Sequence record: NC_006883.2
Length of the DNA stretch: 64,000 nt
Direction: 5' to 3' (one strand)
The position numbers and the translations under genes are program-made. The first letter of the stretch is position 1. The number at the start of each line of letters is the position of its first letter. A model generated the notes under the pieces. It was not told where the DNA came from. It ran no database searches and worked only from the letters and a program-made list of their open reading frames with translations. Below are positions 25,385-59,767 of the stretch, piece by piece.

Positions 25385-25405
25385 CATCGGTGAGCATTTC
25401 CTCAC

Positions 25406-25472
25406 TTCCCTCTAACCGAGATCACGGGGGTTACATCTCTCATATCCACTAGTGAAGGGATTAGTGGAAATA
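25406..25472 (+). ncRNA. PhotoRC-II-like cis-regulatory RNA
   Basis: gagat/atctc stem, tccactagt/attagtgga stem, loop gaaggg can pair with upstream ccct; 5' of phage psbA. Confidence 0.7.
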
Positions 25473-25518
25473 AACGTATCGCTCTACCCTTTGAGCCCTA
25501 CTAAATTTAATTGTCCTC

Positions 25519-59024: not shown

Positions 59025-59156
59025 AACGAAATTCGACTTTTAATTCCAAAATATGCCGACAAAAAATTCGGCAATTTTTTTGCTCTGTAGGGTCGATGTA
59101 GTAAAAAGACATATTGACTTGACTAAATAATTAAAATGTGTTATTATTAACACAAT

Positions 59157-59203
59157 CGTTCAACCTGATACATTCAGGTCGCAAGTAAGCCGACTCGGAA
59201 CGG
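59157..59203 (+). ncRNA. Glutamine-II (Downstream-peptide) riboswitch-like aptamer 1
   Basis: cgttc/gaacg P1, acctga/tcaggt stem, cgcaagt core; upstream of a DUF4278-like ORF. Confidence 0.72.
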
Positions 59204-59205
59204 AT

Positions 59206-59373
59206 CGTTCATCTCATGGACATACTACTCGCTACTATTTTAACTTGTGAAGAGGCAAAGGGGATTATCACTAAGATATCACCTTCGACTCAATATAGAA
59301 CCGAATTGGTTCAAATGGTAAGAGGTAGCACTCAAGGATGTTTATGGGACGCAGAAGTTGACTAAAGGAACGG
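59206..59373 (+). ncRNA. Glutamine-II riboswitch-like aptamer 2 with a ~125-nt expanded loop
   Basis: cgttca-tctcat ... atggga-cgcagaagttgactaaaggaacgg. Confidence 0.62.
59216..59365 (+). CDS. 49-aa ORF nested inside aptamer 2
   Basis: MDILLATILTCEEAKGIITKISPSTQYRTELVQMVRGSTQGCLWDAEVD. Confidence 0.55.
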   Translation: MDILLATILTCEEAKGIITKISPSTQYRTELVQMVRGSTQGCLWDAEVD

Positions 59374-59404
59374 ATTAAAACCCCTACTACTTTGGAGAAA
59401 CCCA

Positions 59405-59551
59405 ATGGCAAAAGTCACTTATCGTGGTGTCACATACGACACTGAGCATCGTCCTAATCAGGCAACACAACCAACAGAGCATCAAGAATCTTACCGTGGT
59501 GTAAAATTCCTTGTTGATTCTGAAGGACACAAACGTGTTCTTGTTGCTTAA
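59405..59551 (+). CDS. DUF4278-like downstream peptide, 48 aa
   Basis: RBS GGAGA; MAKVTYRGVTYDTEHRPNQATQPTEHQESYRGVKFLVDSEGHKRVLVA. Confidence 0.8.
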   Translation: MAKVTYRGVTYDTEHRPNQATQPTEHQESYRGVKFLVDSEGHKRVLVA

Positions 59552-59576
59552 TTCTAGGAATAGCTAAAAAGAAAGG

Positions 59577-59602
59577 GAAGGGGTTGTACCCCTTCTTTTT
59601 TT
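59577..59602 (+). terminator. Rho-independent terminator
   Basis: gaagggg-ttgta-ccccttc + T-run. Confidence 0.85.
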
Positions 59603-59632
59603 ATGCTATAATATACTCAAAATATATTACTA

Positions 59633-59767
59633 ATGACTAGTAGATCAACAATACTAATTCAAACACTTGAATACTGGATTGGTCAAAAGCATCTTCATAC
59701 AGAACAAAAACTTGAAGATATGAAAGCACAGTTGAGAGTAATTAGAGAGGAACTTAATGGACGTTAA
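59633..59767 (+). CDS. Small coiled-coil protein, 44 aa
   Basis: MTSRSTILIQTLEYWIGQKHLHTEQKLEDMKAQLRVIREELNGR, overlaps thyX start. Confidence 0.55.
   Translation: MTSRSTILIQTLEYWIGQKHLHTEQKLEDMKAQLRVIREELNGR

Follow-up and report, generated by a model that had tools for sequence, protein, structure and literature searches.

A conserved small gene nested in the P2 arm of a predicted glutamine aptamer in Prochlorococcus phage P-SSM2 and related phages

The locus described here lies in a 64,000-nucleotide (nt) stretch of record NC_006883.2, referred to below as the window, and consists of two abutting glutamine aptamers (units 1 and 2) ahead of a short DUF4278-type gene. In unit 2, the P2 arm is expanded into an open reading frame (ORF) of 49 codons, which begins in one strand of P2 and ends in the core of the aptamer. 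Comparisons across viral contigs indicate that the nested ORF is not peculiar to one phage but a modular and widespread arrangement: an ORF can sit in either member of the tandem or in both. On balance, we lean towards reading the locus as a short phage transcription unit whose mRNA would be either translated or folded as a sensor, with reciprocal control between the two states. Earlier work had described glutamine riboswitches, established that they are used in tandem and linked to DUF4278 genes, and shown that a few cyanophages carry them (PMC2864571, PMC6212724, PMC9964418); the gene apparently nested in a glutamine aptamer seems to be new and is of high interest. No description of such a nested ORF was found in the literature searched, although an earlier mention in Ames and Breaker 2011 is possible.

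In this region the sequence agrees at 100% identity with that of Prochlorococcus phage P-SSM2, which belongs to the T4-like cyanomyoviruses (Kyanoviridae), and window positions 59100-59620 correspond to positions 245100-245620 of NC_006883.2. An earlier reading of the sequence alone (here, the sequence-only reading) had described two cgttca...ggaacgg units, the P2 strands, an ATG in the 5′ strand of the second P2, and an ORF ending W-D-A-E-V-D-stop in the 3′ aptamer strand. All of these are present, with small corrections of coordinates; the P2 strands of unit 2 are separated by 126 nt (59218-59343). The parts of unit 2 and its ORF are as follows.

59206-59211, plus strand: CGTTCA of unit 2, three bases after unit 1
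59206-59210 (P1) and 59212-59217 (P2, TCTCAT), plus strand: 5′ strands of aptamer 2; the P2 strand includes the A and U of the ORF's ATG
59216-59365, plus strand: hosted ORF, 49 codons, phrog_504 family, ending W-D-A-E-V-D-stop
59216-59218: ATG of the hosted ORF
59344-59349, plus strand: ATGGGA, 3′ strand of P2
59350 onward: CGCAGAAGT in unit 2, just after the 3′ strand of P2
59363-59365: TAA stop codon of the hosted ORF
59367-59373: GGAACGG of unit 2, containing the 3′ strand of P1
59344-59373, plus strand: 3′ strands of aptamer 2, comprising the P2 3′ strand, the core CGCAGAAGU, a 2-bp P3 (AG/CU, 4-nt loop), the stop-bearing CUAAAG (59362-59367), and the P1 3′ strand

The pattern that defines unit 2 (CGTTCA, a gap of 125-155 nt, and the 26-nt 3′ strand) matched once in the window and in 0 of 100 dinucleotide-preserving shuffles. 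Unit 2 gave no Rfam match in a permissive scan (E ≤ 10) of 59050-59650, as is expected given an insert of ~126 nt, and its identity is therefore argued via hairpin-only relatives. Hairpin-only units with the same 26-nt 3′-strand pattern reached the threshold of RF01739 in 10 of 16 loci (35.1-40.4 bits), which suggests that the ORF-bearing unit is the same aptamer with an expanded P2. Folded alone, unit 2 of P-SSM2 was predicted to form exactly P1 and an 11-bp P2, with pairing probabilities of ≥0.95 for P1 and 0.74-1.0 for P2. The fold of 59155-59262 contained a local hairpin (59207-59221; GUUCAU/AUGGAC, 3-nt loop) that can mask the AUG of the ORF before the distal P2 strand is made; by eye, this hairpin is not conserved beyond the P-SSM2 subgroup.

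Two DNA-pattern scans of viral contigs each returned at least 120 loci. For the IMG/VR scan with the unit-2 3′ strand, 116 loci among the matches listed had enough upstream sequence to be classified, and the counts of loci given below refer to these. A long P2 insert was found in 88 loci and a plain hairpin in 28. Every one of the 88 inserts holds an ORF whose ATG lies 3-6 nt 3′ of CGUUCA, and 82 of these ORFs end at a UNA between CGCANAAG and GGAACGG. The remaining six share the start ATG; five end earlier (four of them in the P2 3′ strand), and that of locus L120 runs in another frame. When both units were typed, which was possible for 113 loci, the combinations (unit 1/unit 2) were hairpin/ORF in 60, ORF/ORF in 27, hairpin/hairpin in 18, and ORF/hairpin in 8. 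A YRG (DUF4278-type) ORF comes next in 112 of the 116 loci, beginning 30-36 nt past GGAACGG in 104 of the 112. Triple tandems also occur, such as that of L142 (hairpin, ORF-bearing, hairpin). Two further variants were seen: the hosted ORF of L140 lacks the usual stop and reads through the aptamer 3′ strand into the spacer (69 amino acids [aa]), and L090 joins an ORF of the unit-1 family to a 3′ strand of the unit-2 type.

BLAST against phage records identified related cassettes in P-SSM4, P-HM1, P-SSM7, S-SSM4, S-SSM7, P-RSM6, P-TIM68, and several single-cell virus contigs. In these cassettes, the distance from CGTTCA to GGAACG is 167-236 nt and encloses annotated small coding sequences (T4-GC 429, 430, and 541). 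The nested-ORF architecture is also found in isolates of at least six genera. Both tandem units carry an ORF in P-SSM4, P-HM1, and viruses from single-cell genomes (SAGs), and neither does in P-TIM68. In SAG viruses 98% and 94% identical to P-SSM2, a 199-nt P2 module (L004, 855-1053; L005, 861-1059) with a 67-aa ORF (phrog_6471) replaces the 17-nt P2 hairpin of unit 1 (59163-59179). The two versions part precisely at the ends of P2, as if one cassette had been swapped for another.

The cassette is not syntenic among phages. It is flanked by a 2OG-Fe(II) oxygenase gene and thyX in P-SSM2, by pstS/talC in P-SSM4, by purM/NAD synthetase in P-HM1, and by nrdB/talC in P-SSM7 and P-RSM6. When the unit-2 strand was searched against 185,579 species genomes, it matched two contigs, both in Prochlorococcus single-cell assemblies, and one of them (189,106 bp) is the same contig that IMG/VR lists as viral. 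This search gave no sign of a host copy, though it did not extend to host aptamers with a different 3′ strand.

The manA RNA motif (RF01745, 164-188 bits) adjoins the cassette in several related phages, at the sites listed here. In P-SSM4 the motif overlaps the coding sequence PSSM4_169.1, which may for this reason be a false gene call.

L016, 317-502: manA motif
L014, 1239-1424: manA motif
L007, 1210-1407: manA motif
L006, 1208-1407: manA motif
L054, 5366-5559: manA motif
L055, 1071-1268: manA motif

The hosted ORF is unannotated in RefSeq NC_006883.2, while it is annotated as PCMG_00321 ("predicted protein") in GU071092.1 and as PRTG_00125 in P-SSM5. The P-SSM2 ORF matched phrog_504 (E = 4e-8, residues 2-47) and unit-1 ORFs matched phrog_6471; the two families are homologous across a Cys-to-Cys core (hhalign 91%, E = 1e-6). 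Among 91 unique aligned ORFs, the two Cys residues are invariant with TGT/TGC variation, one Glu is present in 83, indels come in multiples of three, and the second codon position is conserved. The Nei-Gojobori ratio of nonsynonymous to synonymous substitution rates (dN/dS) was ~0.37 for pairs at dS 0.1-0.6 and below 1 in 86% of 1277 pairs. A profile search returned 933 homologous clusters, all unnamed. Of the 120 homologues listed from these clusters, 115 end D-A-x-x-D or D-A-x-D, and the remaining 5 still hold the aptamer-coded D-A; because D-A is retained in all 120, the ORF family was never seen outside the aptamer among them. Taken together, the alignments indicate that the hosted ORF is a real, conserved, and selected coding sequence. 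AlphaFold produced a two-helix model of the 49-aa protein (predicted local distance difference test score, 75), for which Foldseek found no significant match in the PDB (best E = 2.8); a Pfam search likewise gave no match for the protein. A lipoprotein signal peptide, considered for the hydrophobic N terminus followed by Cys, was dropped, as the segment before the Cys is only ~10 residues long and has no charged n-region.

The P2 helix is under selection at the RNA level as well. In 86 unique ORF-bearing units, P2 pairs 1-5 were at least 96.5% canonical, and compensatory double changes at pairs 3, 4, 5, and 6 were present in 14, 34, 41, and 28 sequences, respectively. The paired fraction of P2 was 0.869, compared with at most 0.752 in 500 partner shuffles and 0.36-0.59 in slid registers. 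The predicted probability of P2 closure had a median of 0.92 for native sequences, 0.19 with a dinucleotide-shuffled interior, and 0.42 when synonymous codons were permuted with the protein and its codon usage kept; native closure exceeded permuted closure in 77 of 80 sequences (Wilcoxon 2e-14; the sequences are not independent). RNAalifold, run on a mixed subfamily, returned no conserved interior helices. This ruled out the "rod-like" interior of P-SSM2 as a conserved structure and left P2 closure as the only conserved feature; the interior is nevertheless more structured than its shuffled versions (median z of about −2). By these comparisons, the selected trait is the ability of the insert's ends to meet, and the same RNA is under both coding and structural constraint. 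The sequence-only reading had pointed to ORF conservation and P2 covariation across phage homologues as the places to look. Both were found: the ORF is conserved in all 88 listed long inserts, with the dN/dS and the 933 clusters given above, and P2 has compensatory changes at four pairs together with selection at synonymous sites.

Unit 1 is a complete aptamer in a more conventional form, and its parts are as follows.

59155-59206, plus strand: aptamer 1, a compact glutamine aptamer with P1 (CGUUC/GAACG), a 6-bp P2 hairpin, and a P3 mini-hairpin
59157-59162: CGTTCA of unit 1
59163-59168 and 59174-59179: strands of the P2 hairpin
59180 onward: CGCAAGT
59197-59203: GGAACGG of unit 1

Against RF01739 (type I), unit 1 (59155-59206) scored 35.1 bits, a borderline pass at a gathering score of 35, and against RF01704 (glutamine-II) it scored 26.4 bits, below the gathering score of 33. 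A few relatives lie narrowly above the RF01704 threshold (L014, 33.1; L073, 33.2). The 3′ pseudoknot hairpin that encloses GGAACGG in RF01704 is not formed for P-SSM2, and its columns in the Rfam alignment are largely deleted or noncanonical. The minimum free energy (MFE) structure of aptamer 1 contains P1 and P2. P3 is shortened to 2 bp (AG/CU) closed by a 4-nt loop. Compared with the type-I consensus in the Rfam alignment, the phage unit has CGCA for CGGA and GGAACGG for GGAACGC, departures that are consistent with a swapped long-range pair. The label "glutamine-II-like" given by the sequence-only reading is thus apt for the letters CGCA...GGAACGG, which resemble the glutamine-II consensus, but not for the Rfam model that passes, which is type I.

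Together, these elements form a self-contained cassette (59119-59604) that runs from a promoter through two abutting glutamine aptamers and a DUF4278 (IF17-like) gene to a terminator.

59054-59073: terminator-like hairpin of the upstream gene
59119-59147, plus strand: sigma-70-type promoter-like site (TTGACT, 17 nt, TG-TATTAT), with 10/12 matches and an extended −10 TG
59405-59551, plus strand: DUF4278 gene (IF17-like, two YRG motifs), PSSM2_320, 48 aa, downstream of the tandem aptamers
59579-59604, plus strand: intrinsic-terminator-like hairpin followed by a T run, at the end of the cassette

From the position of the promoter, the transcript is predicted to start at ~59154, the first base of aptamer 1. 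In P-SSM2, the start of the DUF4278 gene lies 31 nt past the end of unit 2. PSSM2_320 scored 29.0 bits against PF14105, above the curated cutoff of 25.3, and matched phrog_5049 (E = 8e-17). With this match downstream and the RF01739 match of unit 1, the proposal of a tandem glutamine aptamer ahead of a DUF4278 gene is upheld. DUF4278 is a domain of the glutamine synthetase inactivating factor IF17, and such cyanobacterial genes are switched on by glutamine riboswitches (PMC6212724). A 44-aa ORF, PSSM2_321 (59633-59767, plus strand), directly follows the cassette terminator and shares 11 nt with the start of thyX. Elsewhere in the window, and unrelated to the aptamer cassette, a PhotoRC-II RNA motif (RF01717) was detected at 25392-25481 on the plus strand (48.9 bits; gathering score, 39).

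Two additional pairings, one at the junction of the tandem and one in the spacer ahead of the DUF4278 gene, could connect the aptamers to each other and to that gene.

59198-59210, plus strand: junction hairpin between the unit 1 P1 3′ strand (GAACG) and the unit 2 P1 5′ strand (CGUUC), with a 3-nt linker
59390-59397, plus strand: conserved spacer element CUUUGG, overlapping the Shine-Dalgarno (SD) sequence GGAG of the DUF4278 gene; candidate partner of the aptamer's CUAAAG

The junction hairpin excludes both P1 helices and is present in the MFE structure of the two-unit fold. The linker between the units measures 3-5 nt in all 116 listed loci, and the free energy of the hairpin ranges from −3.9 to −6.2 kcal/mol. 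The spacer ahead of the DUF4278 gene is conserved. In the folded aptamer, CUNAAG is part of P3 and the junction and carries the stop codon of the hosted ORF; alternatively, it can pair with CUUYRG, which overlaps the 5′ half of the SD (59362-59367 with 59390-59395 in P-SSM2). This 6-bp helix occurs in the MFE structure of ~75 of 82 unique sequences, with its 3′ end 10-12 nt before the AUG, and position N of CUNAAG forms G-U in 42, A-U in 19, G-C in 18, and A-C in 0. The stop codon of the hosted ORF lies 36-40 nt ahead of the DUF4278 AUG. What marks the CUNAAG/CUUYRG helix as a candidate sequestor is solely its conservation over 6 bp and its one-sided covariation.

The arrangement suggests how translation and sensing could be linked. 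As the ribosome-binding region of the hosted ORF comprises the 5′ strands of P1 and P2, and its last six codons and stop form the 3′ core, translation and aptamer folding must exclude each other on any single molecule. A translated RNA would yield a small helical protein with two cysteines, and in an untranslated RNA the ends would pair (P2, then P1) and rebuild the aptamer. In the presence of glutamine, aptamer 1 would fold and release the 5′ strand of unit 2 from the junction hairpin. Aptamer 2 could then fold around the untranslated ORF, hiding the ORF start and turning the hosted ORF off. By the same step, CUNAAG would be withdrawn from the spacer, the SD exposed, and the DUF4278 gene turned on, in a manner comparable to the Synechocystis gifB switch. 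If glutamine were absent, the junction hairpin and the CUNAAG/CUUYRG helix would dominate. A ribosome ending at the stop within CUNAAG would melt both aptamer and sequestor and could couple translation into the DUF4278 gene. That aptamer 2 binds glutamine is a supposition of this scheme, as are the direction of every effect and the coupling to DUF4278. The sequence-only reading had spoken of a dual-function RNA and a translation-coupled logic gate. The dual constraint and the incompatibility of translation with folding agree with that idea, and ligand-dependent hiding of the start is still a conjecture; the stop codon within the candidate SD-sequestering helix, which that reading had not seen, would be a concrete wiring for such a gate.

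Several observations weigh against this scheme. All four combinations of hairpin and ORF exist, which suggests that the ORF is dispensable for the function of the tandem switch. P1 and P2 of unit 2 are predicted by thermodynamic folding to form even without ligand, so that the ORF start may be hidden whatever the glutamine level and translated only cotranscriptionally. Ribosome-mediated coupling would blur, not sharpen, the control of DUF4278 by glutamine. The candidate sequestor spans just the 5′ half of the SD, and in the mimic of the apo state the mean predicted pairing of the SD was 0.49, compared with 0.55 when the aptamer half was shuffled. In addition, unit 2 is silent in Rfam, and the statistics take related sequences to be independent.

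Four other explanations were weighed against the reading of an mRNA that is either translated or folded. The hosted ORF could be a passenger gene in a tolerant P2 loop, the riboswitch acting normally on untranslated mRNA and the gene being expressed independently, with no designed cross-talk and with flanks that serve mainly as recombination anchors between phages. The free combination of hairpin and ORF units would fit such a history, as would the exact swap of the unit 1 P2 module between P-SSM2 and the 98%-identical SAG viruses, the changing neighborhood of the cassette, and the mixture of a unit-1-family ORF with a unit-2 strand in L090. Against it, the ORF family never occurs outside the aptamer in the 120 listed homologues, and no long insert lacks an ORF (88 of 88 listed). 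Nor are the ends of the ORF scattered over the loop: it invariably starts in P2 and stops in or beside the core of the aptamer. Synonymous sites are selected for P2 closability, which argues that folding of the aptamer around the ORF matters, and translation and folding unavoidably exclude each other physically. We regard the passenger gene as unlikely, though it deserves serious attention. Rather improbable, in our view, is a second possibility, namely that translational coupling is the main function. In that case the ORF would be translated constitutively from the nascent transcript, the terminating ribosome would open the SD-proximal helix of DUF4278, the aptamer halves would chiefly set initiation and coupling, and glutamine sensing would be left to aptamer 1 or lost. 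In line with this, the stop codon falls within the candidate sequestor's 5′ strand, 36-40 nt ahead of the AUG of DUF4278, and folding predicts P1 and P2 even in the absence of ligand. In contrast, the core letters outside the coupling helices (CGCA..AAG and GGAACGG) are as conserved as in the hairpin-only units that pass Rfam, and the stop of 6 of the 88 ORFs comes sooner, in most cases within the 3′ strand of P2, at a distance from the sequestor.

It could also be argued that the insertion inactivated aptamer 2 and that its halves persist only as a coding D-A-K-A-D tail and as the 5′ leader of the gene, given that unit 2 has no Rfam match and its 3′ strand is partly coding. Such a relic would leave unexplained why the noncoding CGUUCA and GGAACGG are kept, why GAC and GCA show no variation at their synonymous third positions in any BLAST-found isolate, and why P2 covaries across 125-190 nt while selection at synonymous sites favors its closure. 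We consider it very improbable. Finally, the ORF might be spurious and the insert a long noncoding extension of P2, as the structured interior (median z of about −2) and the missing RefSeq annotation could suggest. This is scarcely credible, since the 88 listed frames are all open for 49-66 codons at aa identities to the P-SSM2 ORF down to 22%, the codon positions have coding-type entropy, and the two invariant Cys codons vary synonymously. Furthermore, 86% of pairs have a dN/dS below 1, the ORFs differ in length by multiples of three, and RNAalifold detected no conserved helices inside the insert in the mixed subfamily. Both the relic and the spurious-ORF explanations are poorly compatible with the dN/dS values, the compensatory changes in P2, and the codon-permutation result.

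A more far-reaching version of the favored reading, in which translation and folding compete for the same mRNA, would be a riboswitch class with a gene as an integral aptamer arm. In such a class, the sensor would assemble only on untranslated mRNA, and the ligand would hide the nested start while freeing the next SD, giving a ligand- and ribosome-gated toggle of two small proteins. The phrog_504 and phrog_6471 families may have been born de novo in an expanding P2 and later passed through the marine cyanomyophages as copies were duplicated and cassettes exchanged. We put this forward tentatively, as a possibility that we would sooner doubt than assert.

Riboswitch aptamers have been treated as compact noncoding domains, and homology searches are built on the same assumption; they are blind to gene-bearing aptamers, as the failure of Rfam to find unit 2 illustrates. 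In a 2017 census, cyanophage genomes yielded just two glutamine aptamers, and riboswitches were judged to be seldom used by phages (PMC5473149). Blindness of the searches may explain that count, compared with at least 120 loci per scan and 933 clusters in this study. If the reading given here is correct, the locus would be a natural case of ribosome traffic and ligand sensing competing over the same nucleotides, and a possible example of gene birth within a structured RNA.

Among known systems, the closest is the type I glutamine riboswitch (glnA RNA, RF01739; Weinberg 2010, PMC2864571; Klaehn 2018, PMC6212724), with which the phage element shares the core, the layout of P1, P2, and P3, the tandem arrangement, and the location in the 5′ untranslated region of a DUF4278/IF17-like gene. 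The proposed ON logic, release of a pairing near the ribosome-binding site, likewise follows the gifB model. Unlike type I, the phage P2 loop appears to hold a translated gene of 49-66 codons with its start in P2 and its stop in the core, the C...G at the long-range-pair positions match the glutamine-II consensus, and the element is phage borne. With glutamine-II (the Downstream-peptide motif, RF01704, of marine picocyanobacteria) it shares the letters CGUUCA...CGCA...GGAACGG and a short YRG/DUF4278 peptide gene next to it; unlike glutamine-II, unit 1 of P-SSM2 falls below the gathering threshold and the 3′ pseudoknot hairpin enclosing GGAACGG is not formed.

The Mg2+-sensing mgtA leader, with its mgtL ORF, and the leader peptides of attenuators also place a short ORF in a leader RNA, where translation picks among alternative structures. 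There, the ORF sits next to the sensing helices or between them, and its product is a sensor peptide without a function of its own, whereas the phage ORF is the aptamer arm itself and encodes a conserved family of 933 clusters. In group I introns such as T4 td, a homing endonuclease ORF is looped out of a peripheral helix, and passage of the ribosome is incompatible with folding. The phage element is similar in that a protein gene sits in a helix loop of a structured functional RNA, but its host RNA would be a small metabolite sensor and not a ribozyme, the ORF overlaps the core at both ends, and the protein is tiny and not an endonuclease. SgrS/SgrT and RNAIII/hld are single RNAs that are both coding and regulatory, and coupling of the MS2 coat and replicase genes works by melting of a sequestering hairpin. 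The phage RNA resembles them in that a single segment would act as message and as regulatory structure, and a ribosome that terminates may open the ribosome-binding site of the following gene. In contrast to SgrS/SgrT and RNAIII/hld, the regulatory part of the phage RNA would be a cis-acting ligand aptamer instead of a base-pairing small RNA, and coding sequence and structure overlap in it nucleotide for nucleotide.

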